The position numbers and the translations under genes were made by a program. The notes under the pieces are model-generated. The model searched no databases. It was not told where the DNA came from and saw only the letters and a list, made by a program, of their open reading frames with translations. A DNA stretch of 33,000 nt, taken from NCBI GenBank assembly GCA_964247055.1, contig OZ176054.1, positions 6,665,001 through 6,698,000 on the forward strand, given 5' to 3'. This document shows, piece by piece, positions 1 to 22,822 of this stretch (its first letter is position 1; each line of letters opens with the position of its first letter). Origin of the DNA: Paragordius varius (Eukaryota > Animalia > Nematomorpha).

Positions 1-68
1 GTATATATTTTAAACTTTCAATACAATATTTTGATGTTTTCATTAATTAAATGTTTTATTTACCATAG

Positions 69-3000
69 TGAGAATTTGATTAAACAAACGATTGATCTTT
101 TGGTCGAGAACGGCTATCAAAAATCTGGATATGAATACGTAATTATTGATGATTGCTGGGCAGAAATAGAAAGAGAACGTGTGTACGATATTAAGACAAG
201 CCAGTATGTGAATCGCTTGGTAGCAGATCGTAAAAGATTTCCCAATGGAATAAAACATCTGACTAATTATGTAATTATCATTAGATAAGTTGATATAGAT
301 TGGAAATAATAATATTTTTTGGCATATGAAGTCATTATAAAATGGATAAATTTTTGACATTTAAACTTAATAATTAAAACTTTACATATTATATTTTCTT
401 TCATTATTGAAATATGAATCATTTCCCGTGGTTTTGATTGGATCAAAAATATCTTTTTTGCCAAGAATATCACAAAAAGATGTGAAAAATATAAACCTAT
501 ATTTTATCCAAAATTTGGTAAACATTTTAAAGACTTAAGTAGAATTATATAGGATTCGTTTTGCAATATTTTAACTTTCAATATTATTGTATTTTTTCAT
601 TTGTTTTTTGAGACCAACATAATTTCCTAAATTTTATATTGTAATGAGATATATTTTAGAATTTGGACATTTTTGCATTTTTATGTTTACCAATGATGTA
701 TATATTTCTTTACAAAAGTGCATTTTTAGTACATTACCTTGTTCTTTAAAATGAACTTAAGTTTTTTAGTTTAGTATTTAAAAATTTTAATAGATATATT
801 GGTATTTTAGGCGCATGCTAAAAATATGAAACTCGGGATTTACATTGATTTTGGTCGCAAAAGTTGCACAGAGTTTAATCCAGGATCCATCAATGATTTA
901 GAAACTGATGCCAGAACATTTGCTGAATGGGAAATTGATTATGTCAAAGTTGATGGTTGTTTTTCCGAACCTATGGACATGGATATAGGTTTTTTTAATT
1001 AAAACATTTTAAATTTCAATTCATTATTCTAATTTAAAAATAATAATTTTTATCTTATCATAATTTGACCTTATCATTAATTGATGATATATTAAGGATA
1101 TCCATTGTTTGGTCATTTTTTGAATAAAACTAACAGGCCTATGGTATTCTCTTGCAGTTGGCCATACTACCAACGATATATTGGGATAGAGGTTTGTTAT
1201 CGCAAAATATAAGGGATTACTTTTATGCTAATTAAAATCCAAAAATATTTTTATTAATAACAATAAATTCTTTGGATATTAAAAATATTTTGAAACTTAT
1301 ACCAAATTCAAAAAGCTTATAATAATAAAAATTATTCCTTTTTTGCATGCAAAATATATCATTGTATATGTTTTATAGGAATATTTAGTAAAATCCAAAC
1401 ATATAAACGTTTAAGAGAATAAATATTAAAACCAATATATAATATTATTATATGGTTTTTAGCTTTTGATAATTATATTCCAATGATAATTATAATTATC
1501 TTTATACATTAAGGATTAATTAATTAATTTCTCTGTATCCCTATTTTATCAGCCAGATTACAGGTACATTGCTAAACATTGCAATTTATGGCGCAATTAT
1601 TGGGACATTCGAGATCAATGGAACTTGATTCGCGAAATCATAACGTATTATGCTTATAAACAAGATGTCCTTATACCTAATGCTAAACCAGGCGCATGGA
1701 ATGATCCTGATCAGGTCAATAAAAAGATAAAATAGTAGCTAGCCATTGGGGGTATTAGATTCTAACTTAACTCTAGTGGCTTTTGAAAAGTTGGTCAAAT
1801 CTTGCAATTCTCTTCTCACATACTTAGCTAGCTACAGACATGTATCCTTTATTTTATCAAAAATTTATATTTTTTCGTTAAATGGGTATAAATATTTGTT
1901 AAAGAATGGAAAAATGAAGAGCTCTATGGTATTAACAATATCATATTCATTAAAAAAGTATAAGAATTACCATAGAGCTCTTGTTTTTTCCATTCTTTAC
2001 CAGATATTTATACCCATTTAACGAAAAAAAGATATTTTTGATAAAAGAGATGCATGACTGTAATAGAGCTGTCTTGAAAAATTTTCAGATGCTATATCTC
2101 AAAAACTATTTATTTAAATTTTTTGATCATGGAGAAAATGCAAAATAAGCGTTATTTGACTAAATTTGGGTGGAATTTTTGGCACAAATTTGTGTTTCCA
2201 AACCCATTTTAGAAACATATAATTAATAACAATGTATGTTTTGGTGAAAAGCAAAAAATACGGTATGAGCTATTAATTTTTAGATGTAGCAATATAGGGT
2301 ATATTATAAATCTAATATTTTAAAACATTTTGGAGATTTGATTTACTTAACTACCCATATAGCATATTTTTAAATTGAACGACAATTGCTATCAGAGTAT
2401 TATTATATCTTGATTTTTAGCCATTTTCATTGGTCATTGTTAACTATTTTATTGATTGATGACTAAGTTTGACCATTATGAACAAGAAATACGATGGCAA
2501 AATCATATTGGTTTTCCTAACAAATATAATGTTTTTTACATTTTCCACATCCTTTATTACCAGTATGATTAACATATAAAAATAATTATAAAACATGTGT
2601 TTATTTAAACAATATTAAAATATTTATCATGCCTGCTGTTATCAGGGTAAAATTCCCACCAACCATCGTTTTCCAATCTAATAGCCTTAAGACAGTTGCT
2701 CTAAAATCGAAAGATGTTGATGGTTGATTTGACACCCCTTTTTTCTTGGTTTTGTATTGTGTTTATTAATAAATAATCAAACTTAATATCCGAATTGCTG
2801 TTTACTTGTTTGGTAAGACAGGGAATTTTATTCCGAACGCCGTCTTCATATATTGTTACAACTTTTTCCTTTTTGCGAGCATTTTGCCGAAAATTCAATA
2901 TGCATTGATTCACAGCTCTCCTTATTTTTATAATCACTTAGACACTTTTTATTGTAATTATAAATAAAATAAATATTCTGCTAGATCAACTAATTTGACT

Positions 3001-5362
3001 TTCGCTACGAGATTTCTTATATCAGAAAAAACGATATCGGAATCAATGAATGAAATAAATGTTAAAATGGCCAATCAATATGGCTAAAAATTAAAATATC
3101 ATAATACCTTTTTACTGTAAAATGCTTCATGGCGGTTGTTAGGAAATTCAGAATTTGTCCAAAAACTTGAAATAAATATTCAATTTTAATCATGCTTAAT
3201 TCTTACAACTTAAAAATTATTAAACTAAAACCGTATTTTGTTTTACGACAGTTCTTTATTAGTTTTACGGTTTATAAAAGAGTATAAAGGGTAGAGAAAA
3301 CACATATTCACACCAAAAATCACGCTCAATTTATCTAAATTTATATATTATCTTTATTTTTACCTCATTTACATAATTCAAAAATTTACCGAGTTTTCGA
3401 GAGATTACTTCAACGTAAATATATGTATGAAAAAAAACAGACTGGCAAACTTTACGCTCCTAATAAACAAATAAAAATCCTACTGTTCAGTTTACAATCA
3501 CACAGCCCATCATGAAGTCTTTTTATAGCATCAGTTTTATTTAATAAGCAGCACAGATAAATTTTGATTATTCTGCATTTTTTTTCGTATATCGTTAAAT
3601 AGGCTAAAATACTAGTTTAGGTTTAATTTGGGGCTACTATTAAATAACTTATATTCTATTTTTTTTATAAAATATATCTCTGTAATTAAAGTCCTGCGTA
3701 TATCAAGCCATATATTTCGCCAATGTGATAAATACAAATATAAAACTTTTTTTGCAACTTGGCCTCTGCCATGCTAAAATGTGCTTCTCATAATCTTTTT
3801 TTTTTGAAAAAATAGCGCCTATTAGCAAATCGCCTGCTGCATGCATTTTTCCGTTGTCAAATAAGCTTTTTTTATATTTGCTCAAAGTTAAAAATACCTT
3901 AGGCAGTATTATGGGATTCTCATAATGAACCACTAAGTATTTTTATCATTTTTTTACAAATGTTCGGTGAATATTTTTTATTACGTATTATAAATAAGGG
4001 GTCATGATGCGTAGAGCCATTTATGTTTTTTCGCAATCGATTATGAGAGGGGCCCACTCTAAACATGTCACTTTTATATTTAATGCAGTTAATGGTCGGA
4101 ACGCCCGGATTAAGTTTTGAAGAAGCAAAGGCACACATGGCTATATGGGCCATTCTAGCAGCTCCCTTAATCATGTCCAATGATATTGTCAAGGTCCCCG
4201 AACGTATAAGAAAGGAAATCCTACAAAATTCTGAGATTATTGCTGTAAATCAAGATGTCTTGGGTATTCAAGGACGTATGTTATATCAAGTAATTTGGAA
4301 ATTGTGTATAATATATTTGTATAATGTAGAGTCATTTCTATTTCAAATAAAACAGCCACTATGCGCATGAACATATGAAAATGATTTTGAATCTGTACAA
4401 TTTTCTATCCCTACCATGATATAGGGTTAATGGGTTTTAATTTATTAAGGGTAAATTGTGTGACTGCGCATTTAATCGTTCTTGGCTACAAACAATTCAT
4501 TTATAACATTTATTAAATTATGTCCTAATACGTATAAAACCGAAGTTAACCTTTTTGCTTTTAATTCAAATACATAATTATCTTTTTTATATTGAGTTGC
4601 TTGATAAAAAAGAATTTGTATATTTATTCATGGTTGATGTTGTTAAATAGGTTTGTGGTAAATTTTCATTAACTACTACAAAACAAATATCTTTTTTAAT
4701 AATTATTAATAAACAATTATATAAAGTTGATAAAATAGGATAAATTCAAAATAATGCTATCAATTAATTAATTATATAAGTATCAGAAATCAACAATCTT
4801 TTTGTCTTTTATGTTTTTATCATTACTTAATTAAAAAGAGGATCATAGATTCAAAATTTATAATTTTACACATACGCGTTATATTGATAATAAAACCCAT
4901 AAATATTTACGATTTGTTAGCAAGATTTAGTGCAAGTATGGTTAAAGCCCATTGCTCCACTGGGAACCAAATATGCCGTAGCATTTTTATACGCATTCCC
5001 TGATGACACTTTTTTCTCGATAAATGGCCATAACATTGGTGGGAATATTGTTAAATCTAATGGGTTGTTAGATTCAGAGAGTACGACTCCAGAAATAAGT
5101 GCTTCTATCAAAAAGCATTCTTTTACATTCCATTTCAGTGCTTTGGGAATTGAAAGCGACCACAAACAACATTTTCTTTTCAAAGATTTATATGGTACAC
5201 ATTTTTTCTACCAATTATTTTTATTTTATTATCTTTTCCGTTCAAATTATTTTTGTTATTAAAATAGATCACAACAATCAATGGGTTATGTTGCCTCATG
5301 AAAATAAAACAATTAAAATAGCCAAACCTGGTGTTAAATTTTATATGGTATTAAAATCTTAA
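69..5362 (+). CDS. NAGA: Glycoside hydrolase family 27 enzyme (alpha-N-acetylgalactosaminidase / alpha-galactosidase A-like), 5'-partial, 7 exons in window
   Basis: Exons 69-270, 811-988, 1097-1191, 1553-1714, 4089-4289, 4921-5194, 5268-5362 (stop TAA), all GT-AG and in phase. The spliced protein has GH27 motifs IIDDCW, RFPNG, KLGIY, YVKVDGC (nucleophile Asp), FSCSWPYY, LWRNYWDI (acid/base Asp), PGAWNDPD, WAILAAPLIMSND and IAVNQD. The first five introns and the upstream acceptor fall at the same positions and phases as in human GLA (S|E, Y|, G|Y, |P, DPDx|L, Q|). The first exon(s) lie upstream of the window. NAGA versus GLA orthology is not resolved. Confidence 0.95.
1852..2046. repeat. Hairpin / MITE-like inverted repeat in GH27 intron
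   Basis: Arms 1852-1931 and 1968-2046 are near-complementary (TTCGTTAAATGGGTATAAATAT...GAAGAGCTCTATGGTA versus TACCATAGAGCTCTTG...ATATTTATACCCATTTAACGAA), with a 36-nt loop. Confidence 0.85.
2090..3410. mobile_element. Old long-inverted-repeat element relic in GH27 intron
   Basis: About 2090-2460 aligns by eye with the reverse complement of ~3045-3410 (e.g. AAAATACGGT, TTTTTAGCCAT..ATTGG.CATT). The copies are strongly diverged and the centre has no recognisable ORF. Confidence 0.5.
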
Positions 5363-5793
5363 ACCTTGAATGATATAAACTATATTTAATTTTGAATCTC
5401 TTCTAAAATTCTCAAATAAAAGGACAATTAATTGAAACCAAATATAAATGTTTATCATACGTATATATTTAATTTTATGCTTATTGTTATAAATTATAAT
5501 CAAATATGGCATTTACTAAGTTTCATACTTCCATTTTTATTACACTAATATTTAATTATATTTTTAGGGAGTTTATATAATAAATTATTGCATATCAAAC
5601 AATTATTAATTTATATATATTCAATAAATTTTATTTTATCCATATTTTCCCCGTTAAATTTTAAACAAAAATTATTTACTTTCGATTTCATGATGTTTTC
5701 TGATTTTAGCAAAAAAGTTTTATGGTGTTAGAGTTAATCCATTGTTGCAGTTTTAAATCCACCTATAATTTAGTCGCATCTATCTAAAATGGT

Positions 5794-5822
5794 ATAATAT
5801 ATATATATATATATATATATAT
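5794..5822. repeat. (TA)n microsatellite
   Basis: Visible TA run. Similar runs occur at ~10435-10453, 25522-25548 and 27531-27550. Confidence 0.85.
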
Positions 5823-5845
5823 TTAATAAAGGTAAAATACCATTA

Positions 5846-6052
5846 CAGTATGCATTTTAATGTATGTTCATTAATTATATTGCCAGTCGAATAACATAAA
5901 TGGTTTATCCAATGCGTCAAATACTGACCCACGAAATTATTTCGAAGTACACATATGAAAGAGGATTGACGTGAGAATTAACATAGGCTTTAATTTGATG
6001 GATATTTTATAATGTTAAATTTTGAGATTATTATAGCAATTTATGTTAACAT
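5846..6052 (+). repeat. ~200-bp dispersed repeat, copy 1
   Basis: Direct similarity to 20738-20937 (CAGTATGCATTTT...ATTGCCAGTC...AACATAAATGGTTTATC...GTACACATATGAAAGAGGAT...CGTGAGAATTAACATAGGCTT). Confidence 0.85.
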
Positions 6053-6254
6053 TTGTAATATTGTTGTTACTTATTTAGATGCGGAATTTTGTGGGTTTTT
6101 ATCTTTGATAAATTAATAAATAGTAAAATACGTATTTTAAGATTTTTATGTTAATTATTCCTAAATTTAATAATAAATATTTTTCAACATGCTAAATACC
6201 TGTATTAATCAATCTTGGTATTATAATTTTATATAGTTGTTATTACTAATTAAA

Positions 6255-6845
6255 AAAACACAGGTAAATATATATTTGTGAAAATTTAAGTAGATTTTAG
6301 ATTTTTGTCTTTTATGTTTTGCATTGTTAATTATTAATAATTTTTAAGTATTTCAGACATTTTCAGGTAAATTTCGGTTTTTAAATTTAGTCAAATTTAA
6401 TTTTTTTCGTTTTTTTTATGTAACATTGTTAATTGTAATCAATTACTACATATTTTGGACATTTTAATAAATGATAAAATTGCGGTTTTTAACAAATTTA
6501 GTAAAAAAAATTTTTTGGTTTTGCATTGTTAATTGTAATTAATTACTACATATTTTGGACATTATAAATACAGGTAAAAATTGCGGTTTTTAACAAATTT
6601 CAAATTTAACATTTTTTGTATTTTGTATCATTGTTATTAATTACTAAATATTTTGGACATATAAAAAACAGGGGAAAATTGCGGTTTTTAGTAAATTAGT
6701 AAAATTTTTAATTTTTTGTTTAACCTTGCTAATTTATTAATTACTTTATATTTTTTATACATTGATATATACAGGTAAATATTACTATGATTTGCGGTTT
6801 TTTAAATTTTTAGGAAAATTTTTTGTTTTGCATTGATAACTAATA
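6255..6845. repeat. Degenerate ~90-bp tandem minisatellite, ~6-7 units
   Basis: Recurring blocks CATTGTTAATT, AATTACTACATATTTTGGACAT, CAGGTAAA and TTGCGGTTTTT at ~90-bp spacing. Confidence 0.8.
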
Positions 6846-7179
6846 TACAAATATAGTTATTTCTGAGCATACAAATAAAAAAGCATGTTACGGTTTTAGG
6901 TTTGACATTTTATTTTCCAAATCCAACGATGTATATTTTAACAAACATCTTATGTCACCCATTTCCTCAGAATTGTGAATATTCGTTCGTTTTCAAATTT
7001 ATGGTAATATTAATTGTTTTTTACAAATTTTTACCCAAATTTAAAAAAGCAAACGTATCTTTAAGCCAAAATTCTGAGGTGAGAGAAATGCATCATCGAA
7101 TAAAAAAGTATTTAAAATCTTAAAGTGTTTATTCCCGTTTTCATAATGCTCCAAAATACCATAAAACTCGCTTCACCAA

Positions 7180-7400
7180 TATTTTGCTGGAAATTAAATT
7201 TTAGGCATATTATCTTTTTGGTAAAAAACTTTTTGTTGTCATAAATTAGCATATGTTTAAGATATTATCGCATAATCTCAGGCTCTTTCGCTTTTGTTTC
7301 AAAAGAATTTGCCCATTTTGGACGGGTCTACGACTTTAAACTTTCGAAGCCCACATGTAAAAAAATATTTAGGTATTGTTTTGCTTTTTAAATGTAGTTT
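7180..7400 (-). repeat. Dispersed repeat related to 14900-15070
   Basis: The reverse complement shares ATGTGGGCT, AATTCTTTT.AAA, GCCTG.ATT..GCGATA and AAA.ATATGCTAA in colinear order with 14900-15070. Confidence 0.5.
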
Positions 7401-8371
7401 ATCATATAATTTAGGGATATTTTTTGGAATGGGCTTTTTTAATAAAATATCTAAGAAAATGCTAGCAGCTACCACAAAAGTGAAAATAATAATAGCATTC
7501 TAAAATCACTCGTAAGGGATAAAACCCAAAGCATCTTCTAATCATGATATTTACTCATATTTCATCAGGAATATTTTTTGTGTTTAGTTTTTTAAATACT
7601 AAAACAATCTAATTTTTCTTGCATTCCCAAGTTTATAATAATATGTAAATTTTAAGGTAATTTGTTTGGAAACATAGAATTTTAAAATTAATTTCTTAAG
7701 ATAAGCTGATTGCTTGAAATCAGGTTCATGAGTTTATTTTACCTGGCAACATTCCAAAAATATAAAAGTTTCACACTAAATTCCACCAAATCTGGCCTTA
7801 TGATTTATTGCAGAATGGTTATTTTACTAATTCCACTTAAAATAAAAACATTTGTTATTGATTATTTATTTATTTTATTTAAAATGGTAATTTTAACGCT
7901 GCAAACACAGTTCGATTAATCAAATGTTTAATCAAACGTGATAGGTAACTTATACTTTCTCTGTTAAACATAATTTAAAGTATAGTTGATTATATTTAAA
8001 AAATTCTTATAAATTCAAATTATTATTTATTTTAAACTATTACATTTTTATAAAAATTGTATGATAGGTGTTATATAAAATCTTTCTCGTAAGGCTAATA
8101 ACATTTACCGGAAATAAGGTGTTTATCAAATTAACTACATATAAAAAATGTTGACTCTAGCATAAAAACAATATTATATCAGACGCTTCTAGTGTTGATA
8201 TATCGAAATTTCAAAAATAAAAAATATTTTAAGGTTAAATAACAATATTGAGAATCATATATCTGATAAATGTTAAATTGATAACATACTCGATAATTTT
8301 ACAAGCTAAAACGATACCCTTTCACGCGTATACATCCAATGTTTTCATTTTTTATTTTTACATCAAATAAT

Positions 8372-11300
8372 ATGTATTGCTATCTAATCCTGATTGCCAT
8401 GTTAACCTTTTACAATAACTTTAAGGGGAGTGAAGCGTTAAAAGTACCACTAGGTTGGTCAATTTATCAAAAGTTTATTACAAAATATGAGGGATTAGCT
8501 AATTTTACATTTCAATTTTCTGGGGGAACATTTGAACATAAAAACGTCAATTACACGACAATTTTGGGACTAAGCCCACCTGCCCAATATGGTCTAGTTG
8601 ATGGAAATTACGCGGTTACACATAATAATGATGAAGCGCTAAAGGGAGAAATCGTTTTGACTCGTAAGTAAATAACATATCAATAACATTTTGTTTAAAT
8701 ATTACACAGTAATAATTTGTAATTTACAAAACGTATATAAATTTTTTAAAAGACAACCATTCCATTTCAATCACTGATATTTCCAACATATACTATTCGA
8801 AAGAATTTTAAATAATGTAATTGGATTTATTACTAATTAACTTATATTCTTTATTTTGCAATTTAAAACGATAAGTAATATAATATTGGAAAAATTATGG
8901 TTTTTTAGAAAAAAAAATATTTGTTTTCATTTTTCTACTTCTCCGTTTAATTTTTTTACGCTAATAAAATTTGAGGAGAACTCATGGTTAATAGCAATTA
9001 TGGACTTTTGATAACAGATATTGTTGCTCATATATTTTTTATTTTTATACCCTTTAAAACCATTATTTTATTAATTATCATATTAGTTATGTTGCCAAAT
9101 AATTTTTTTATTTGACGGCACTGAGAACGACGAAAATTTTATGTTATGATAATTAATTAAACATTTATATATACTATATACCAAGGGTGGCCAAACGGTA
9201 GACCGCGGTCGATACGTGCCCGTGAGACTCCAAAACGTGCCGACTGAAAAAATCTTAAAAAATAAAAAATATTTTTGCATGGAATTTTTCACAAAAGTTA
9301 ATTTATGCAGAAACGAGAGTTATAATTGATTATATATTAAAATTTTAATTGCGTAAATAAACTGTGGTGCCTGTTCGCAAAATATAATGTTAGTTATAAT
9401 TTTAACAAAAATTTAATATCTAACACTTGCAAAAATATAAAATCCTTTAGACAATTAAAAACGAAACGTTTATAATGGTTCTTGTTAAAATGAAAAAAAG
9501 ATATTTAAATTATATCATAGCCATAATATTAATAAAAATGGAATATTACGGTGAGCAGACACAATGCTAGTTTTCATTAAACATTGCCAGATAGCACATG
9601 AAACAAAAAGAATTATCATCGGCTAATAATAGTAAAAAGTGAATAAAATATCTATAAGCCAATAAAAATTCCTTTGAATATATATACATGACAATAATTA
9701 ATGAAGACTAGCATAAAACTCATACTCTAATTAAGCAATAATAGGGCAGCAAGTGTTTTTGTTTGCTTAGAAGCAAAAAATTCAATAGTTTTTGGCAATA
9801 TTTTAAAGGTTTTTGTAAAAAATATCCAAAGACCTTTTAATGTTTTTCGTGGTTAGTGAGATGTTAGTAAAATATATTATAATTTGTATTTCTGTTATCA
9901 TCTAGCTAATCATTATAACTACAAGATATCAGAAAATTCAGAAATAACAATGGAAATAGATGTTAACCAATATTTTAGGACCGGTGACCTGGAACATAAC
10001 ATTACATTGATTGAAGTTTTGTCACGGAAGGTAGTGAAATTGAATCCACAAAAGGGTGTTTGCTTATTGGAAAAAAGAGGGTTTATAGACGAATTGGGAA
10101 GCTACCATATTATTGCTAATGATAAGATCATCAGAACGTTTGATGTCATATATGCTGCACCAACTATTAAAATTTACAAAACATATAATAGAAGATTCCT
10201 GCATAAACAAAATTGTCAGAAGCTGTTTTTAAATCAAAATTTAACTCAAAAATGTCTTTTTGAACTAGAGGATAAAAATGGAGTCGTTTTAAAAACTGGT
10301 CGGGGATTAATAAATATTAATATATCAGTAACTCACAACGATATATATACACTAAAAGTAAATAACGTCCATATCCGAAAATGGAATATAACTGTACAAA
10401 GTATGTATTTACTCTTTTATCTAAAGTCTTTATTATATATATATATATATATACCATTTACAATTCAATTTCACCCTTAAACAATTCAAATTCACCCTCG
10501 AACAATTCAAATTCACCCTCAAATAAAATATATGTTTTTTAAGATTAAAAATTACCTATATTTTATATATTTTTCAAAAATAAAAATTTTGTTTTAAATT
10601 AAAATAATACTGAAAAAATAATAAACTATACCATAAACATATATTTCATATTAATAATGAGTTATATTAGTTCGAAAACAATTTATTTTTAGGGTGAATT
10701 TGAATTGTTCAAAGGTGAATTTGCATTGTTCAAGGGTGAATTTGAACTGTAAATGGTATATATATATATTATATATATTGTAATTTTTAGTGGAATAGGA
10801 ATATTATATATTATCCCAATATAATTTATTAAAAATGAATTATTTATATAATATGTGTAAAGTTTATTAATATTGATGACATAATTTTTATGTTGTTGTA
10901 TTTTTAGGTATGGGCAATCACTTTGAAACAAGTAAACATGAAAACTATTTTTATAATGCAATTTTGATAAATCGTTTGATATACGTTAGTCTGATACATA
11001 ATATGCTACATAGATAGCTCAAGGAAATATTATGACTGTGATAGCTATGTAAAATTTTCTACACTTGGGTGGAATATCCATACTACGATAATCCTAGGCC
11101 CGTCATACGAATCGATTTCTGCAATTCGGTGTCTCAGACAGTCGATCAAAAACAGTTGGTCTTGTCGGGTCTGAAACCTGTTTTTTACAATTATTCGTAT
11201 ATTTATCTGAAAAAATATAAATATCTCCATAAAATAAATTTGGAATGTGTAAAATGCAAAGAAAGTTCCCAAGGTATAATAGTTGAATTACATATATAAT

Positions 11301-13403
11301 AAAAAATTTTGGTACCACTGATTCTGATATCCTTTAAACTTTAATTTTAACTGTTTAACACTTTGATTCAAATTGGGGTATCTAAATACCCCAGACTAAA
11401 TTTAAGTTAGGATTTTTAAAAAACTACTGAAGAAAACGTTACCAATTTAAATATATGTTTCTACCCTAAAAATTAAATAAATAAGCAATTAAATAAAATT
11501 TTTTTTTTAAAATAAGTTCCATGTCAAACTACTTCGACGCCATTTTTATTTAAGAAAATTTTGCAAACATCGTCTTCATTTAATTTTAGGGTAAAATTAA
11601 AGCTAATTTTTTATTTAAATTACATCTAACATTGATAGAAATAGAAAAAACGGTTTATTTTGTATTTTCAATTTTACCATTGCACACATGTCACGTTGAC
11701 TAAATTTTTACATTTCGTAGCTTTTAATAAGTAATATCAAGTATTTTTGAATAAAATTTTTTATATATTTCGGTTTATTAATGTAATATAAGTGCAAAAT
11801 TTTGCCATTGTTTCGATTCCTTCCATATTTTAGAGAATTTTAAGGCCTGGGGTATCCAACTACCCCAATTTGAATCCAAGGACTGACATGAATGTGTTAT
11901 ATGTGCAAGTGTTAAATATGTTAGCATCTACTTTTAATATTAAAATAAGATATAATTAGTGTTTGTCAGCTGTTGGCATTTAGTAAACACATTACCTTTT
12001 GGGATAGTTTTATAAAGTACAATAACTTTCAAAAAGTTTATTTAAAACATTGAGCTCTGGGATAGAGAGATAACCCAAAATGAAACTAGTAGAAAAAGTG
12101 AAAAGGTAATAAAGTGTTAAATATTTGTATTTTATTAAATTTTAATATCGCAAACTTCTAAGATTTCTTGCAACATATTCTTATTTCAAAACTAAATTAG
12201 ACTACAGAAATAGTAATATTTATTCTTAATAGCCTATAGCCTTCGTGCTGGGAGTTTGGAAGGCTATGTTATAATTCCGGAAAAAGTCGTGTTTATTACT
12301 GCTATTATAATTAAATAATAATTTTTTTGTGGTTTAGGTCGAATAAAAGTATGTACAATAGAGGAAAACACATCAACTAAATTCTATTTGATTAATACAT
12401 AAATTCAATCAGGATTGAAATTAAAATTATTAACTTTCGATTAATGACAAGATTAAACCAGATAATTTATCATTTACAAATAAGATTCTACATTAGATTT
12501 AAATTATAAATTTTGAGCACTTTGGCTTCGATTAATTGTAGTTAGGTGAGCGGCAATAGTATTTTTTAATTACTTTATTTAATTATAATATAAAAGCTTG
12601 ATTAATACTCAAGCTCTAAAAGGTTTTCTGCATTATACCATTTTTCTAGATCTAGATCATAAAATAATTTCATCTAAACTTCAATATTTATAATATATTC
12701 ATTACTTCTCAGTTAATAAGAAGCTCTATCAGCCCATTTATAAATAAGGATAAGAATAACAATTTACGAGCACAAAATTTGAGTAAAAAAATTGGGTTAA
12801 TAGATGTTAATTCATCGATTCGTATATTGGCTTTTTAGGGGATAATTGGATGACAAACTTTAATATATAATTAATAAATGAATTAAAAAAATTCACAAGT
12901 TTTTAACTCAAATCTGACGACAAAGTGGGATTTTTTGGTGCCAATCCTCTTATAAAATGTAGAATTCTGATCAATAATAGTTACGTTAATATTTGCAATG
13001 CCTATTAAAAAAATTTTTTATTAATTTTAATAAATTACATTTTTTGTTCGATTAAAACATAAAAAAATATAAGATATATAATTAATTAATACATTGTGCT
13101 TTCTATTATTTAAAACAATTTAGATATCACATGGGACAATAGAATAAGTGTATGGGATCAAGTTAAACCTTATCTTCTGATAGGTCAGCAAACGACTGAG
13201 GTAACCATTTTTTCGCATGCGCGTTCACATACTTTCCGATGCAGTGCTGATCATTGCATGAAATATAATTTGACTGCTGGAAATAGCATAAGATTAACAG
13301 GGGGTCTTACATTAAATGTGGTAAATGTTAAATAAATTATTCATTTCATTCTATGTTTTATCTGAACTAATAGGAAGTCAGTAGAATTAATAATAAAATT
13401 TAA
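8372..13403 (+). CDS. Secreted immunoglobulin-superfamily-like protein, ~439 aa, 6 exons
   Basis: Exons 8372-8663, 9906-10400, 10908-10984, 11045-11273, 13124-13320, 13374-13403 join in phase without stops. It begins with the signal-peptide-like MYCYLILIAMLTFYNNFKGSEA. The last domain has Ig spacing NLECVKCKESSQDITW...TFRCSA...LTLNV, assembled across the 11273/13124 junction. There are several N-x-S/T sites and no transmembrane segment. The small exons 10908-10984 and 13374-13403 are less certain. Confidence 0.75.
9187..9260 (+). mobile_element. hAT-like MITE left end
   Basis: CAAGGGTGGCCAAAC followed by a GC-rich subterminal stretch resembles hAT (Charlie/Buster-type) termini. No matching right end was found. 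Confidence 0.35.
10454..10756. mobile_element. TA-flanked MITE with 20-bp subterminal tandem repeats (Tc1/mariner-like target site)
   Basis: Inverted ends CCATTTACAATTCAA / TTGAACTGTAAATGG, each carrying ~3 copies of AACAATTCAAATTCACCCT, and both embedded in (TA)n. It sits in an intron of the Ig-like gene. Confidence 0.8.
11359..11911 (+). mobile_element. piggyBac-like non-autonomous element, copy 1
   Basis: TTAA at 11355-58 and 11912-15. Ends CACTT...AAGTG, with inner inverted repeat GATTCAAATTGGGGTA / TACCCCAATTTGAATC. Homologous to copies 2 and 3. Confidence 0.85.
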
Positions 13404-13819
13404 TGGGTAGTGGCAAAGTGTTCTCAGAAATATAATTATGATATTAGGGATTAGGGAGTCATATTGCATATGATCTATTATATTAAGAAAAAAAATTACG
13501 CTTTCTAATAAAGCCGAAGCGAGTCTGGATCAATTCTATTCAAAAAGTTCAAATAATAAACTGTGCTTTTTGATAATGTTTTAATTTTAAATATAATTTG
13601 TTATAAGTAATAATTAGGTCACAATGCAATAGGAACTTAAAATTTTTTTAACCAAATATAATTTGTAAGTATAGATTTTCTGAATTAATCAAAATATTTT
13701 TTTCAATTTCTAGATTTCAATAGAATATTTGATATAAAAACCGATAGAATCTTTAAATTGTATTACAATTCATAATAATTTTTGAATAATTTTTGAATAT
13801 CAATATTCATTTACAATCA

Positions 13820-14820
13820 AGGTATTTATTCATAACACTAGCTAACAAATTACTTTTTTTAAACTGCCATTCTTATAAATTTAAATTTTTATTCATTAAA
13901 AAATTGGTCTAACTCTTAAGAATTTTTTTTTATTAGGGTTTATCGAAAATTTTCGGCTCTGATTTAACATTTAACTCGAAATTTAAAATTAACAGTTTTA
14001 GATAGAGAGCCATGTATTATATATCATTCAAAAGAGCGCGAAAAACTGTATCTTTCGAGTGGTAGAAGGCTATTTAAATTTATTTGATTTAAAAGTATAG
14101 TCAAAATTTTTAACTCTTAAATAAATCAAATATTTTCACATACAAACTACTTAGATAATCATATAATCATTTTAATATAATTATTAGGGTTACATTAGTG
14201 TTTAATAAAAAAAATCTTTGTAAATCTTTTGGTTTGCTTATTAAATAAAAAATATTATCATAATTATTTTATCTAGTGGATAAAATGTATAGTTATAACT
14301 GTAAATTTATTACATAATGGCTATGAAAAATCAAAAATACCAACTTCGTTTTAAGCCTTTAAAATTTTGAAATTATAAGCCATGTAAAGAAAATAAATTA
14401 ATATTGATAAGATGGTAGTTTTTTAAAAAACAAAAAACTTAACATGGCTGTTTGAATGGCAGAAAAGCAATAAATAAATGTTTTAATCAAAAAGACTTTC
14501 TTGTGTTATCTACGGACATTCATTGCCATTTGGACAAAGTATAAGCTATTTTTATCCATTTTAAAATATAATAATGAAAAACGCTTTCGCTTCGCGCGTT
14601 TGTCGCTTCCTATGTCCAATATTAACTATCGATGTAAAACATATTAGTATGCATTTTATAGATTTTTTATACTCTTTTGAATGATATATAACAAATGGGC
14701 ATTTGTTCCATTTCAAAGAATAACATTTTTTAGTAAAATTTCGAAAGAGAGTGCATAATCCAAAATAGTTTAAACTTTTATGGTAAGTGCTCCATATCAG
14801 AAAATGACAAAATCTGAGCA
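13820..14820 (+). repeat. ~1-kb dispersed repeat, copy 1 (inverted relative to 23190-24300)
   Basis: Colinear reverse-complement similarity, e.g. CGCTTCGCGCGTTTGTCGCT at ~14588 versus AGCGACAAACGCGCGAAGCG at ~23451, and shared TAGTTATAACTGTAAATTTATTACATAATGGCTAT. Ends are approximate. Confidence 0.8.
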
Positions 14821-15430
14821 CGTTTTTGTAAATTTTTAATGAAAGCTTAAATGCTTCATTCCAAAAATATGGCTAAATATCACAAACCACTTATAAAGAG
14901 CAAACAATATTTTTATGATGCAAAGATGTGGGCTCCAAAAGTCCCAAATTTTTTTTACTTTTCTAAAACGGTATAATTCTTTTAAAATAAACTCGAAAAT
15001 GCCTGGATTGCGCGATATATTAAAAATATGCTAAATTTCATCAAAAAATATATTTTTTAAAAAATGCGTAATTTTTACAAAAATTTAATTTTTTACAAAA
15101 TGTTGTTGAAGCGTCCTCATCATTTTTAGGGAGGAGAAAACTCTGAAATTTTTGAAATTATCTAAAGTGGTTTCCAAAGAGAATTGCCATCAAAGAGGGG
15201 TTATCAAATAGGGGGTAGTACGAATCGTGAGAAACAATCTTAAATTCTTAATTTTTTTTAAATCTAAATAGTTTAAATCAAAAATTGCAATATATCATAT
15301 GCCTTTATGGATTTTAAGAGTGAAAAATATGGAATTCATTTAGTCTCCGACCAATTCGACCTGTAAGTCTATTGTATGAAATAATACATTGCTTATTAAT
15401 TCCATAATTGATCATTTGTATTTTCCTGTA

Positions 15431-15933: not shown

Positions 15934-16043
15934 CTCAAAAATGAAGTGGTTTTCCTAAAATAAGATAAGGTATAAATTAATTTTCTGCTAATTTTCTAAA
16001 CTTTCCATTTTTCTCAATATGAATTGTTTATTTAAATGTAAAA

Positions 16044-16049
16044 TTTATT
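16044..16049 (-). terminator. Polyadenylation signal of gene Y
   Basis: AATAAA on the minus strand 28 nt after the TAA at 16077. Confidence 0.45.
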
Positions 16050-16076
16050 TGCAAACAGTAATGCAATTACAGAATA

Positions 16077-19000
16077 TTATTGTTGTAATGATTGAATTAA
16101 ATTCAAAAATTCTTCCCAACCTATAACGTTAATAATATAAAGATACTTCCAATTTCATCATTATTCCCTAATTATAACAACAACAAAGATTTTATTAATT
16201 TTTTATTGAGTTTTTAATTTTTTAATAATATTTATGCATAGAAATTAGAGAGGAATGTTAGATCTTACGCATAATTTGATCAAAATCGAAATCTACAAGC
16301 ATAACTGGACATTTATACCATTTAAATGTCCGAACATCCCTAAAATTAATCATAAAGGATTTTTTTAATACTTTCAATGTTTCTTGTCAACTCTAAATAA
16401 TTATCAGAATAAAAATATAAGATAAATACGAGGCATTGAAGCTTGTTCGATTTGATTAAGCATAGTGCGACAATCTAATGGAATAAATAATAATCAATCA
16501 CATTTTATATGGATAGCCCAATTGGATAACACCCGTTTAAAAAAATAAAAAAAATTGTAAATCTAACGGCTTTTCCAGGCAGCCATATAAATAAAAATAA
16601 TGGTATATAATTTTACGAGAATCCGTAGTATAGTTTGCAAAAAATATAATTTGAGACAAGTTTTCATCAAATGTTTGTTGGATAAATTTTAACAATCCCC
16701 CATGCTTTAAAATAAATTAATTTTCAATAGTTATTATAATACCTCTCATGGCTACAAAAGCGTCTTAATTTAAGACAAAATTATACCTTCGATACCCGCT
16801 TTAAAACCTAAATATTATGTGTGCAATATAAAAAAATATAATTTTACCATTTAATCTTCCCAATATATATGGTGCTTGAGGCTAAAATATAAATTTACCA
16901 TTTTCCCACGTAGTTAAACCTGCATAGTTAATCATAGCATACTTTCCATTACTGCTGAAAATCTTTGTGTTATTAAATTCAAAGCTATTTTTATGGATAG
17001 AATATATATAATTAAAATCTAATCAAGAACTAATAAAATTATTTTAAAAAATTATAATTTTAAAACAATCAGATTTCATTATTAATATCTAATTTTATGA
17101 CAAACTAAATGAACAAACATATAGCAATTTTTAAGTAATATAAATAATATTATTAACGATTTTTAGATATGTTTATTACTTAAAACATTTATTTAAGGTA
17201 ACGTATTAGTAATACCAATTTTTTTTCAAATATTGAATGTTAAGTTTAAGTTACATTAGTTTAATTAAAGTGTGGACCGATTTAACTACGATTATAGATT
17301 AAAAGCTTTATTGGGTAGTTAATTATGTCCCATTTCTAACTTTAAATATGTTAAAACTTCATTATTTATGTTATAAAAATTTCCTGTCAAAATACTGATA
17401 AACAGTTTTTTAGCGCATCTTGCTGTACATTTATATCTCTTATATGGCGTTTTATTTTAAAACACATTTGCTGAATTTGATACTCTGATTAAACTTTTCA
17501 AATGGCTCACCTATAAGATTGTACTTAGGCCGTCAAACCAAAAATGTTTTCGTATAAATAAAATAATGTTTTGAAGTTTTTGTACCATATATAATAATTG
17601 GCTTTCACTTAAAAATTGAAATCATATGCACAAAACGTTTTTAAACGTATTGAATAGGGATGTAAATAAATAACAATCAATTATCTATTTATTCTTGTAA
17701 TTTAAAATGTTATATTGTAACTATGTCAAAAAATATGGTTAATTTTATGAAAAAATATTTGTCTTTACGTTTTGTTAGTATAAATTTATATTTTACTGCA
17801 TTGCATCGTCATTTTTTATATAATAAAGGTGGCAAATCTAATATGATCGTTCAAAAAAATTCCATTTTAATTTATAAATATTAGATTTTGTTAGAAGGAA
17901 CAGCATTTAATGATGTTCAACATAGCTTACAGTATTATTTTTTGGAGGAGGGGGGAAGAGTTAATTATATTTAAGGAGCTAAATTTTTTTCACTTTTGTA
18001 AGGTTTAGGAAGTCAGCTTACAAAATTACCAAAATTAAAATAAACAGTTTTAAAATAAAATATTTCTGATAATTAAGGTAGAAATAAATTTGCGTTGGAG
18101 ACTACTCAATCCTATCTTTATTAATCTTTTATAATTGTTAGTAAATTTTATTTGAGATTTGGCAAATTCACAAAAAATATTTAGCGGAAGATATTTGCCA
18201 TTACTGAGGCAAAATAGGAATCGCCCTAGGTTTGAAATAATAAAATGGTAATCTTAAAGAGTAATTATATAGAAGTATATTTTACCGTGATATATCCAAG
18301 ATGCAGCTATATGGCATTTAATTTAAAACGTACCTCTCCGCTCATAATTCAGTGCTATATGTTATATTGTAACAAATCTTATTATTGGTTATAAGTCGAT
18401 TAATTGATGCATTTATAAAAAATATATGTGAGTAAAGAGAAATCTTTTAGCTGTTGTTAAGATTATAAATTTTATGCACAATTTAAGCAGCGACCAATAA
18501 AATAATAAAAAGTTGCTATACGCGCCAATTAAGGACGCCAAAGCCACAACAATATTGATTGTTATTGTAAATTTAACATATAAACCTCGAACATTATAAA
18601 GGCCCCTTGCTACAATATAAGTTATAAACAATTAAATATGTTTCATCAAATGAATAATAACACCATATAAAAAATATTTTTATAGCAGAATAAGCCAATG
18701 AAGGTAAGATTTTATGACTCAATCGGGGTTCGGTTTGACAGGTTTAACACATAAAAACGCTTGATTCCGCTTCCAGGGTGGTCAAAAATTATAAACCACA
18801 CAAAATTATTGTATGCTACTTTTCTGCAAAAATATCTACAAAAAATGTATTTTATGATTTTAGTATAAAAATATTAGTAACAATAAGGTAATTGTGTTTA
18901 AAATTTAATAAAGGACAAAAAATTTAATCATTAACCCGTGTCGCGGTTTCAAAAAAGTTTGGTATTGAGGGTTTTTTTAGTTACAAAACGGATCAAAAGC

Positions 19001-22000
19001 GACTCTGGTTTCGATTTCTGCTTAAAACTAGTAAAATTAAGCCAAATATTATTTTCTGTTTGGTCTTTATTATAAATACCTAAAATAGTTCTGGCTATAT
19101 CTAAATTTAAATTATTACAATGAATTGGTTGTATAATTTTGAAATATCTTTAAATATTTTTGCACCTGCGTATAAAAAAATAATACCTGGGTTGGATAAT
19201 GCTATATCATAATTAATCAATTAAGTTACTTCTTTCAAGGATTGGAAATCCTGTATACCAAAGTATTAAAAAAAATAACCAACTTGAGGGTGTTTGTTGG
19301 GGTGTTTCATCTAAATGTAAAATATGAAAGATTTGTCTTCTTTAATAGTCCAAATCTAATTTTAGTTACATTTTTAACATTATTGTCTTAAATAGCATTA
19401 TCAGTTTTAATTAAACTTATTATGCAAGTCAAATTAGACATTTTCAAAATATATTTTGGATGTTAAGTAATACTAGAAGGTCCTGCAATCGGTTCATCTA
19501 GATATAAAAAGTGAAATAATGAGCCATTTTTGCCCAATGAATACTGATTTTATTAATTAACACAAGTAAAATGATTTAGATCAGAGGTGCCCAACACAAA
19601 AGGCTTAGCGGGCCCCTTTTTAAACTTAAAAATATGGCGGACTATATAAATAATTAAATACATATAATAAATATTTCATTAGATTCCATATACAAGAATG
19701 CAAAAATTATAAACTTCACCAATATATTACTAGATTAGGGAAGACTTTATTGGATTAAAGCTTGATTAAAAATTGCAAATTTTATAATATTTATGTTATA
19801 TTCACATATTTCACGGACTCAAAATATCTCAGAAGGCCGCTTATACATTTCTGGAATTTTTTCGTTTGCACCGCGTTGTAAATGGTGGTTTATTTAATAA
19901 ATGTTTAATTAATAAAAATGGATGTTTAATAAACTGATAAAATACAACCCTGAGCACTGCTTGTAGACGGTTGTGGATTATCGATTTCATCTATGAAATG
20001 TATAAGTAAATTTTTAAGATATTTATAAAATTGGTATGGAATATGAAATAAACAACATCTACACAGCTACATTATAATATTTATTATGTTTAATAAATCA
20101 CCCAAATTAGAGAATATTTCTGGCAAAAAATGGATTTACGACGCCTTTGTTAATTTTTAACACACTTGACGACAACGCTAATTGTATAATGGGATAACTT
20201 TTAGATTATTTTTTGATATTGATTAGTTAACAATATATAAGAAACCACCAGAAACCTAAGAAATGCACTTCTTACTATTAAAATTAGTAAATTTCCCCGA
20301 GATAGAATAATTCTTGGCTCAAAATATTTTGAAGAGTCGATATATAATTGATAAAGCAAAAAGATAAAACTTTGTACCAATCAATGAAATGCGTAATATA
20401 TAAAAAAATGATACCCGGTTTTGCCCTTTTAAGACCTGTAAATATAGTGCAATAAAATACTTTGTGAATCCATGTCTAAATTTTAAAAAATAATTTTTAA
20501 TGCGATTGTTGCATACTCTATACTTATTTTAACTAAAATTTATAAATTGCCGAATTGTATTAAAAAACTTTTAGTTTTGAAATATCAAAAATTAAATATA
20601 TCAACGAATATAGAAAATATTATAAAATGTTTAAAGCGTTAATTATCATGTGAATTTTAAACAGCTCAAAGAATAATAACTGGGATCTTTTATGAATGCA
20701 GCATTGTTTATAATCAATATAATTAAATCCAATTATTCAGTATGCATTTTATTGTCTGTTAAGTAATTTTATTGCCAGTCAAACATAAATGGTTTATCAA
20801 ATGCGAAAATACTGCTCCACAAAATCATTTCATAGTACACATATGAAAGAGGATAACGTGAGAATTAACATAGGCTTAATTTGATGGATATTTTGTAATG
20901 TTAAATTTTAAGAATATTACAGTTTTTGTGTTAACATGTTACTTAAGAACGGGTATCCTCATTTTAATTTCACTGATTTGCAATACTTTTACATTTATAT
21001 TCAAATATTTACTAATTTAAAAGATTAGGTGATAAAAATATGTGTAAGTTTCGACTGATCATATTCAATAAAGCATTCTTTATGGGCAGAAGCAAACCTT
21101 GTTATTCTGTTCTACTGTTTCTTATATTACGCTTTAAATTTTGTTCTCTTTTTTTAAAGCAAAGTATGCGTAATGAAAATATTATTATGCTAAAAAACTA
21201 GCTTATATTTATTTGATTGTGAAAAATCTTGACTATTTCCCATTAATCTTAAAAAATAAATGGAGATAAGGTGGGCTAATTATACAATTTCTCGATTTAG
21301 GTAAAAAAAAGTAGATATAACCATCTTTAAATGGCTTAATCACAGAGCACAAATCGAAAAACATTCTGTTATTAGATATATACATATATGTTCAGAATAT
21401 CTAAGTTTTGTGAACTGTGTATATAGTTTAAAATATTTTTACAGCAAAAATAAGTGAAAATAAACCGTCTGGGTTTAATTTTCTTTTTAAAGACTTTGTC
21501 TCGTCTACAGAGGGTTCTTCTGGCTGTTGATCTATAGTAGGTTCTGGATCATCTAAACAATTTAATTTATTGTATACCAATAACTTCCACTGATGTTGGC
21601 TCCGTCAACTCCGACTCCAAGTTTGATTCAACTATTCTTTGTGCGCCTTAAAATACATTTTTACACACATAATTTATACAAAAAATGGTTCCTCAAATCA
21701 AACATATATGCACCGAAAACCACAGTTTCATAGGCTAAATTATATTAGCTGTATATATTATAAACATTTTGGAATATACAATGGAACGTTATCATGTTTA
21801 TTAGTTTTAGTCAAAATTCTTTGATATTAAATTCTTCCGGAGTTTAAATCACATTCCCTTTTAAAAAAGCAACCCCTAAACATTATCAAAACCTACGTTA
21901 GGGCGCTATTTCCATCATTTTAGAAACTAAAACAAACAGGATTCGTTAAACATAATTATTATTCATACTGTAAAACTAAAATATATAAAGTAAAACAAAA

Positions 22001-22775
22001 ATTTTGTATAAACACCAAAAAAATCAAGGTTCGTCTTTTACTTACAATATAAGAATGTTGTTTAGAGAAAATAATTTTTTAAGCAGTGTTATAACGGGAT
22101 GAAAAATATACTAATTTCAAAATCAAATATAGGTTCGCTCTCAATAAAAATTAAAAAACATTTTAGACAATTATAAATGTATGTATGTTATGTACTTCAA
22201 AGTAAAATACAATTCAAAAAACGCTTAGTGCAAATTTTTTTGATCGGGAGGATGGGTACATTTTCAAACTCAATAATCGTTTTTTAATATATTTTACATG
22301 TGAATTACACACACATACATATAGATTTTTAACTGTTATTGAGTAAGTAACTCCATTTTGTTACAAAACCAGTAAAATTTTTAATCCTGTTATATTAAAT
22401 TTTGCTTTACAACAATTATTTTGTGTATATACAGAGAGCAAATTAATAAAATTATTTATTTATATATTACTTATTATATTTTGGAACTATATATTTAATT
22501 AAATTTTTTCTATAATATTGTTTAAGCTTTTCAATTAAGCAAACGGTATAAAATCGGTAGGGGGCATTACAATTATTTGTAGTGTGTGTTCGAATCCCGA
22601 AACTGCGCAATTTTGCCATCATATATTCTTAAAACTTTCACGGGTTCTTACTAAAATACAATTTAAGTCTTTACCTATCAAATTGATACAGGAAATAAGA
22701 AACTCTAAACCAGAGGTACTCACCAAAAAATAGAAAAGCAGAATATAATATTGTGCTTTTGTCGCAATGCACCAT
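16077..22775 (-). CDS. Gene Y: micro-exon gene encoding a putative secreted ~323-aa protein of unknown family (28 exons)
   Basis: Exons 5' to 3': 22775-22724, 21646-21578, 21552-21466, 19497-19474, 19310-19284, 19250-19230, 19201-19187, 19100-19080, 19055-19029, 18609-18586, 18354-18334, 18306-18286, 18252-18205, 17607-17539, 17510-17484, 17422-17358, 17335-17290, 16984-16943, 16919-16899, 16874-16848, 16807-16787, 16763-16743, 16474-16430, 16392-16372, 16339-16319, 16292-16269, 16167-16147, 16120-16077. All are GT-AG and give one stop-free frame of 972 nt. 24 of 26 internal exons are phase 1-1 and ten are 21 nt. A TATA/Inr lies upstream and AATAAA downstream. Some individual junctions (e.g. 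17335-17290) have weak donors. Confidence 0.75.
19583..19890 (+). mobile_element. hAT-like MITE in a gene Y intron
   Basis: Left end CAGAGGTGCCCAAC with subterminal GCGGGCC. The right end is degenerate. Confidence 0.45.
20738..20937 (+). repeat. ~200-bp dispersed repeat, copy 2 (in a gene Y intron)
   Basis: See copy 1 at 5846-6052. Confidence 0.85.
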
Positions 22776-22786
22776 ATAATACCGAC

Positions 22787-22822
22787 AATATGACGCATAT
22801 GGAGATATTTATATTTTATATA
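22787..22822 (-). promoter_or_regulatory. Putative core promoter of gene Y (TATA box plus initiator-like TCATATT)
   Basis: TATATAAAA at 22822-22814 and TCATATT with its A at 22791, 31 nt downstream of the TATA start and 16 nt upstream of the ATG at 22775. The sequence is AT-rich, so a chance match is possible. Confidence 0.45.

Follow-up and report, generated by a model that had tools for sequence, protein, structure and literature searches.

Can a protein-coding gene of an AT-rich animal genome be built largely from exons of a few codons, many of them separated by introns of only a few tens of nucleotides (nt)? This question is raised by the minus strand of a 33,000-nt stretch of the Paragordius varius genome (assembly GCA_964247055.1, contig OZ176054.1, positions 6,665,001 to 6,698,000). 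The whole stretch is called the window here, and all coordinates are window positions; its G+C content is 25% throughout. The first-pass annotation of the locus had proposed a hidden gene of 28 exons, which encodes an apparently secreted protein of 323 amino acids (aa) and has the architecture of the Schistosoma micro-exon genes (MEGs). We think it fairly probable that the minus strand holds a real and intact protein-coding orphan gene of the micro-exon type, extending from ~22790 to ~16030 and spliced roughly as the 23 exons that had been listed individually, perhaps with one or two more.

All 23 listed peptide pieces were located at the places given for them in the minus-strand translation. 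Joined from 22775 down to 16077, the 23 exons form a stop-free coding sequence of 723 nt, which encodes 240 aa and ends with a TAA stop codon at 16079–16077. All 22 introns start with GT, end with AG and interrupt the frame in phase 1, and the 44 splice dinucleotides are all intact; the reported GT-AG borders and symmetric phase-1 internal exons were thus confirmed at every junction of the listed exons. The 21 internal exons are 15–87 nt in size, each length being a multiple of three, and 17 of them are no longer than 27 nt; ten are 21 nt, three are 24 nt and three are 27 nt, and lengths of 15, 45, 48, 69 and 87 nt occur once each. The intron sizes are bimodal. Thirteen of the 22 are 23–40 nt long, mostly without an internal AG, and nine are 86–1968 nt (eight of them 100 nt or more), with none of 41–85 nt. 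Because every internal exon is phase 1-1, the frame is kept when any of them is skipped, so variation of the product by in-frame skipping is possible.

The other part of the 28-exon chain did not stand. Five exons had not been listed, and they look spurious. They could lie only between 18205 and 16919, where the phase-1 candidates are AT-codon junk with negative coding scores and no G+C contrast, and where a read depth of 6–20 times the local level at 17440–17839 indicates repetitive DNA. Two further candidate exons, absent from the earlier list, were found elsewhere (Table 1); the gene has 23 exons, possibly 25. Some of the longer introns of the gene carry repeats. High-copy repeats occupy 20640–21039, with a summed contig depth of more than 120000 compared to ~600 locally and many variant copies, and lesser depth peaks of 1400–11600 occur at 17440–17839, 19440–19639 and 16040–16239. 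Tandem repeats were considered as the cause of the exon arrays and do not explain them.

Evidence for the gene came from tests stricter than an open frame. An objective chain was defined by a YAG acceptor, an R/GT[AT] donor (the slash marks the exon border), an open frame, exon lengths of 15–90 nt divisible by three and an exon G+C that exceeds that of the 20-nt flanks by 0.1 or more. On the minus strand of the region, the longest phase-1 chain of this kind has 22 exons, compared to 13 and 9 in the other two minus-strand frames and 4–6 on the plus strand. Real DNA elsewhere gave 1–6 exons, except for one other minus-strand cluster, and 450 block shuffles (blocks of 10, 20 or 50 nt; maximum over the six strand and frame combinations) gave 2–13, with a median of 6. 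The objective chain recovers 14 of the 21 internal exons of the earlier list, and the remaining seven fail solely on an AAG acceptor, a C/GT donor or low contrast.

The size of the exons is also not random. Six strict 21-nt units, defined as YAG followed by 21 nt ending in G/GT[AT], are located in 16000–19600 of the minus strand, compared to five in the other 62 kb of the two strands taken together, and strict units of other lengths (12–33 nt) occur 0–2 times each in the same interval. A Monte Carlo test, in which the maximum was taken over strands, positions and lengths, gave a look-elsewhere-corrected P of 0.003–0.017 for this clustering. All six strict units are open in phase 1. In composition, the internal micro-exons are nearly free of lysine, with 1 Lys among 138 codons, whereas Lys makes up 9.2% of chance exons matched for G+C (P 2e-5) and 6.1% of the protein of a neighbouring GH27 gene; Asn and Ile, which likewise have AT-rich codons, are not depleted. 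Four of the seven minus-strand AGATGA[AT] sites mark, within 2.3 kb, the starts of exons 3, 4 and 5 and of the 42-nt candidate at 19990–19949. The four tag/ATGA exons all encode acidic peptides rich in Pro, Ser, Thr and Gln, and such a set is what exon duplication would produce.

The two strands together, 66 kb, contain just two GGTGAGT sites, one being the donor of exon 1 (minus strand, 22724) and the other lying at 23099 of the plus strand, 375 nt away. The two donors point apart across the only strongly G+C-rich island nearby, a layout that suggests a divergent promoter. The first two codon positions of the micro-exon gene, but not the third, are enriched in G+C, and the same holds for the GH27 exons. 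Taken together, these observations, which are independent of the earlier choice of exons, show that the locus stands out beyond chance. They lend statistical support to the proposal of a hidden symmetric phase-1 micro-exon gene that open reading frame (ORF) finders do not see; over the locus there is no ORF of at least 70 aa except chance ones. About one of 27 variants of known position in another individual falls in an exon, compared to ~3.5 expected, which is suggestive and not significant. The sole exonic polymorphism, at 16794 in exon 16, is synonymous (GGT to GGA).

In the predicted product, exon 1 contributes MVHCDKS and then twelve residues without charge, most of them hydrophobic; its end is in phase 1. 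It fits a signal peptide, and secretion of the predicted product is plausible; a plausible cleavage site lies six residues beyond the end of the hydrophobic stretch. Residues 18–86 form an acidic stretch (net charge -12) in which Pro, Ser, Thr and Gln are abundant. The last 154 residues have eleven Arg and a single Lys and show a hydrophobic periodicity at 3.6 residues (P ~0.01), the period of a plain amphipathic helix. A heptad-repeat coiled coil was not indicated, as the power at period 3.5 in these 154 residues is no higher than in permuted sequence (P 0.9). In the 21-nt exons, hydrophobic residues are concentrated at positions 2 and 6. No paralogue of the gene was detected by tblastn within the window, and searches of metagenome contigs with a degenerate exon-18 pattern and an exact exon-2 24-mer gave no match. 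Neither Rfam (at gathering score over the whole window and at E <=1 over the locus) nor a tRNA scan gave a hit, and a host gene for small nucleolar RNAs therefore has no support.

A number of observations weigh against a gene of this form. The motif and contrast thresholds of the objective chain were picked after the exons had been seen, which makes that test partly circular; despite this, its margin is large and the opposite strand serves as a clean control. Codon log-odds, G+C periodicity and short-intron candidates are each weak alone. A chain finder based on codon log-odds (trained on 360 GH27 codons) is too weak for 7-codon exons, a test of bounding by G+C islands gave 11 versus 3, which is also weak, and neither simple splice-motif counts per strand nor a strict scan for single short introns (31 versus 26 per strand, with 23 on average in shuffles) is informative. 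There is no good small-residue -3/-1 signal-peptidase site directly after the hydrophobic core of exon 1. As had been claimed, no homologue was recognized: Pfam returned no family for either micro-exon cluster even at E <=10, a word-based search of the 154-aa spliced part against 5.8 billion proteins found none of 85–270 aa at E <=1, and the ORF of exon 3, the largest exon, had no match when searched alone.

Transcript data point the same way. RNA-labelled runs of the species contained 0.00 of the sampled words, both for the whole locus and for exons 2–3, and the largest RNA run gave nothing when mapped to 16040–22039. The runs that do match the locus are DNA-like. The reads of three of them on 16040–22039 have a depth of ~600, even over exons and introns, and their contigs are colinear without splice joints. 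In addition, most animal spliceosomes are not known to handle introns as short as 23–28 nt. All introns of the GH27 gene, which lies in the same window, are 107–2400 nt long, and since these neighbouring introns are ordinary, tiny introns are not a general rule here, which is the main biological reason for caution.

How far could chance alone account for the chain? Under a plain criterion (GT-AG introns of at least 20 nt and only phase-1 symmetric exons), the longest chains in control 6.6-kb blocks of the window reach 392–622 aa on either strand, and 50 shuffles of the region gave 460–751 aa with ~40 exons. Phase-1-open AG..GT candidates number 37–94 in every 6.75-kb block, and triplets of exon, short intron and exon occur at ~10 per kb everywhere, so loose pairs are uninformative. 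Because controls and shuffles yield such chains, the 323-aa stop-free phase-1 chain, which had been offered as evidence, is none by itself. It could follow that GT-AG-bounded open segments were simply picked from AT-rich DNA and that no such transcript exists, and the absence of detected RNA and homologues would agree with this. However, the objective chain reaches 22 exons, a length that no shuffle and no opposite-strand frame approached, and the 21-nt cluster, the lysine depletion, the tag/ATGA family and the paired GGTGAGT donors could not easily have been selected by a reader. We regard a chance origin as quite improbable. A recently dead gene, or a spliced non-coding RNA with exons open by accident, would likewise account for the lack of detected expression in the few RNA runs and of homologues and of paralogues in the window. 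Yet the frame is intact over 23 exons along with every splice dinucleotide, the exons are protein-like in composition, showing codon-position structure together with a specific bias of amino acids, and no Rfam family was found even at the relaxed threshold; we consider such a relic very improbable.

It is unlikely, and still worth keeping in mind, that the gene is real and the model only partly right. In that case exons 1–5 and the extra tag/ATGA exon would be genuine, whereas the arrays with 23–40-nt introns would not all be joined, being used alternatively or in a mutually exclusive way, or some of their members would not be exons. The top coding log-odds belong to exons 3 (+13 bits; also a member of the objective chain), 4 and 5 and to the extra exon at 19990–19949, and several 3' exons have near-zero scores, AAG acceptors, C/GT donors or no G+C contrast. 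The lack of any intron under 107 nt in GH27 fits this as well, and with all internal exons in phase 1-1 any subset stays in frame. A known precedent is provided by exons 2 and 3 of alpha-tropomyosin, which are mutually exclusive because the intron between them is too short; there, as here, small neighbouring exons lie closer than the usual minimal intron length. Different from that case, the last coding exon here begins 26 nt past exon 22, and exon 22 is usable only if this intron, which precedes the obligatory last exon, is removed, so at least one tiny intron must be spliceable if exon 22 is used. Moreover, the strong exons 2 and 3 are just 25 nt apart, the strict 21-nt cluster and the lysine depletion reside mainly in the 3' arrays, and a second locus of the window has 27–32-nt introns between good exons. 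We keep the intact gene, spliced roughly as in the 23-exon model, as the preferred reading.

The gene resembles the MEGs of Schistosoma mansoni in several respects. MEGs are defined by internal exons mostly of 6–81 bp in multiples of three, that is, symmetric exons; their micro-exons are mostly 15 bp, their introns are 0.1–5 kb, and their products are up to 189 aa in size, with Lys conserved towards the C-terminus (PMC10526429). In both, the many very short internal exons have multiple-of-three lengths and allow in-frame skipping, the first exon is longer and encodes a hydrophobic N-terminus, conserved motifs are few, and gene predictors have difficulty (PMC10526429). The earlier assignment to the MEG architecture thus holds for exon size range and symmetry, and not for the other features. 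The commonest exon here is 21 nt instead of 15 bp, 13 of the 22 introns are 23–40 nt, which departs from the long introns of MEGs, and the product is ~240 aa with a nearly lysine-free C-terminal part of 154 aa. Pfam and the word-based protein search found no sequence similarity to a known MEG family, and the organism has a GH27 gene with ordinary exons and introns. As intron length, exon size, product length and lysine content differ and no sequence relationship was found, we did not file the gene in the MEG families; it may represent a new variant of this kind of gene.

Very short spliceosomal introns are known from other lineages. Introns of ~25 bp are found in Paramecium and Nyctotherus, where they form a narrow GT-AG class like the ~23–40-nt class described here (PMC5014332). 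Nearly all introns in these ciliates are tiny and the genomes are gene-dense, whereas here tiny introns are mixed with introns of 86–2400 nt and none is found in GH27. The human introns called "ultra-short" in another study are those below 66 nt, a limit far longer than the introns here (PMC4463651).

How might such a gene work? Transcription would start from a TATA-like element beside the divergent promoter, and the ordinary GT-AG spliceosome would remove all introns, the tiny ones included. The product would be ~240–260 aa in size and of three parts: an N-terminal hydrophobic segment, probably for targeting to the secretory pathway; an acidic linker of ~70–85 aa, rich in Pro, Ser, Thr and Gln with a net charge of -12, which would derive from the duplicated tag/ATGA exons; and a nearly lysine-free, amphipathic-helix-like part of ~150 aa, encoded mostly by 7-codon exons. 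In its widest form this would be a system of micro-exon cassettes that evolved independently and has no sequence relationship to the Schistosoma MEGs; in it, 7-codon phase-1 exons, separated by spliceable ~25–40-nt introns, would be combined or skipped to yield a repertoire of lysine-poor amphipathic secreted proteins from at least two tandem genes on the minus strand (the second at ~30328–27414). We hold this complete scheme to be rather unlikely.

If transcripts confirm the gene, entire genes of this type escape predictors and ORF finders in the AT-rich genomes of animals. Introns of 23–40 nt flanking exons of 21 nt would then be spliced in an animal whose genes are otherwise ordinary, and such introns are as short as, or shorter than, those usually considered workable in all but a few lineages. 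The schistosome design of micro-exons in symmetric phase would have a counterpart with other dimensions and a nearly lysine-free product, and the locus would be a concrete place to test directly whether skipping of exons in frame diversifies a protein.

The coordinates of the gene model and of the neighbouring exons are given in Table 1. The signals at the two ends of the gene are common words in this DNA: TATAAA occurs ~87 times per strand in the window and AATAAA ~109 times, so the candidate TATA box and poly(A) signals are weak support.

Table 1. Features of the micro-exon locus and of two neighbouring genes or clusters in the window. Phase 1-1 denotes exons with phase 1 at both borders; contrast, exon G+C minus flank G+C.
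Feature	Position	Strand	Remarks
Possible TATA box, TATAAAAT	22813..22820	-	45 nt upstream of ATG; weak evidence
Exon 1, 52 nt, ATG + 17 codons (MVHCDKSTILYSAFLFF)	22724..22775	-	donor G/GTGAGT, phase 1; hydrophobic, signal-peptide-like
Exon 2, 69 nt, acidic	21578..21646	-	AAG/..G/GTAT, phase 1-1; GC contrast 0.30
Exon 3, 87 nt, acidic, Pro-rich, with KRKL	21466..21552	-	TAG/ATGA, phase 1-1; after 25-nt intron
Extra candidate exon, 21 nt, LKRAKP	20415..20435	-	CAG/..G/GTAT, phase-1 open; GC contrast 0.33; absent from earlier list
Extra candidate exon, 42 nt, EIDNPQPSTSSAQ	19949..19990	-	TAG/ATGA, phase 1-1; log-odds +6.4, contrast 0.30; absent from earlier list
Exon 4, 24 nt	19474..19497	-	TAG/ATGA, phase 1-1
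Exon 5, 27 nt	19284..19310	-	TAG/ATGA, phase 1-1
Exon 6, 21 nt	19230..19250	-	after 33-nt intron
Exon 7, 15 nt	19187..19201	-	after 28-nt intron
Exon 8, 21 nt	19080..19100	-	strict TAG/..G/GTAT
Exon 9, 27 nt, weaker exon	19029..19055	-	after 24-nt intron; donor A/GTTT, negative GC contrast
Exon 10, 24 nt	18586..18609	-	strict motif
Exon 11, 21 nt	18334..18354	-	strict motif; donor G/GTACGT
Exon 12, 21 nt	18286..18306	-	strict motif; after 27-nt intron
Exon 13, 48 nt, weaker exon	18205..18252	-	after 33-nt intron; AAG acceptor, log-odds -3.2
Intron, 1285 nt, probably without real exon	16920..18204	-	sole possible site of the five unlisted exons; junk-like candidates only
Exon 14, 21 nt	16899..16919	-	strict motif
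Exon 15, 27 nt	16848..16874	-	after 24-nt intron
Exon 16, 21 nt	16787..16807	-	strict motif; after 40-nt intron
Exon 17, 21 nt	16743..16763	-	after 23-nt intron; GC contrast 0.38
Exon 18, 45 nt	16430..16474	-	donor C/GTAT
Exon 19, 21 nt	16372..16392	-	after 37-nt intron
Exon 20, 21 nt	16319..16339	-	strict motif; after 32-nt intron
Exon 21, 24 nt	16269..16292	-	after 26-nt intron; donor C/GTAAG
Exon 22, 21 nt	16147..16167	-	log-odds +4.0
Exon 23, last coding exon	16077..16120	-	after 26-nt intron; stop TAA 16079-16077
Two AATAAA hexamers, possible poly(A) signals	16027..16049	-	28 and 45 nt past stop; weak evidence
Second cluster, phase-1 exons	30231-30193, 29224-29198, 29122-29099, 29071-29015, 28200-28156, 28124-28077, 28044-28006, 27744-27706, 27503-27414	-	
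GH27 exons	~31-270, 811-987, 1096-1191, 1553-1714, 4092-4286, 4921-5200	+	

The other minus-strand cluster, at 27414–30328, is a possible second gene of the micro-exon style. Its first exon (30328–30262) has a clear signal-peptide-like start, MFFYTLLAFLILK.., and a phase-1 end at G/GTAAAT; phase-1 exons of 39–57 nt follow it, with introns of 27–32 nt between neighbouring exons. The objective chain of this cluster has 14 exons compared to 1–6 in the background. Its product is not lysine-poor. A second minus-strand cluster of the same style counts in favour of the micro-exon gene at 22775–16077. In a run with a third organism label, a 151-nt contig matches 16851–16951 (exons 14–15 and flanks) at 87%, compared to 97–100% for other pieces; it may come from a paralogue or a diverged allele.

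Upstream of the micro-exon gene, the segment at 22935–23105 of the plus strand has a G+C content of ~50–60%, TTTCAG acceptors at ~22949 and ~22958, and a perfect ATG/GTGAGT donor at 23099–23105. It probably represents the first exon, or another early one, of a divergent gene on the plus strand; plus and minus frames are both open, with low third-position G+C, and the strand assignment is tentative. The G+C-rich ORF at 22925–23143 was also considered as an alternative first exon of the micro-exon gene and tentatively set aside, as the TTTCAG acceptors and the GGTGAGT donor favour the first exon of a divergent plus-strand gene.

The GH27 gene, which occupies 1–5300 of the plus strand and is cut at the window start, encodes an animal-type alpha-galactosidase/alpha-N-acetylgalactosaminidase in six ordinary exons. 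Its donors are weak (GTAATT, GTTTTT, GTTTGT, GTCAAT) and its introns are ~107–2400 nt in length. By alignment to PDB structures, exons start at human GLA residues ~124 and ~268, which we take to be exon borders of human GLA; the gene seems to keep ancestral intron positions. Further along the plus strand, 8339–15400 contains long open frames at 8339–8671, 9884–10480 (198 aa) and 13114–13332 and GTAAGT donors at 8664, 13665, 14783 and 15363. Pfam gave no match to these open frames, and a further plus-strand gene is probable here. On the minus strand, 11396–11427 and 26283–26314 share a near-identical sequence of ~32 nt (…CTTCAGTAGTTTTTTAAAAATCCTAACT[TC]AAATTTAGTCTGGGGT); the two stretches, separated by 15 kb, probably belong to a dispersed repeat.

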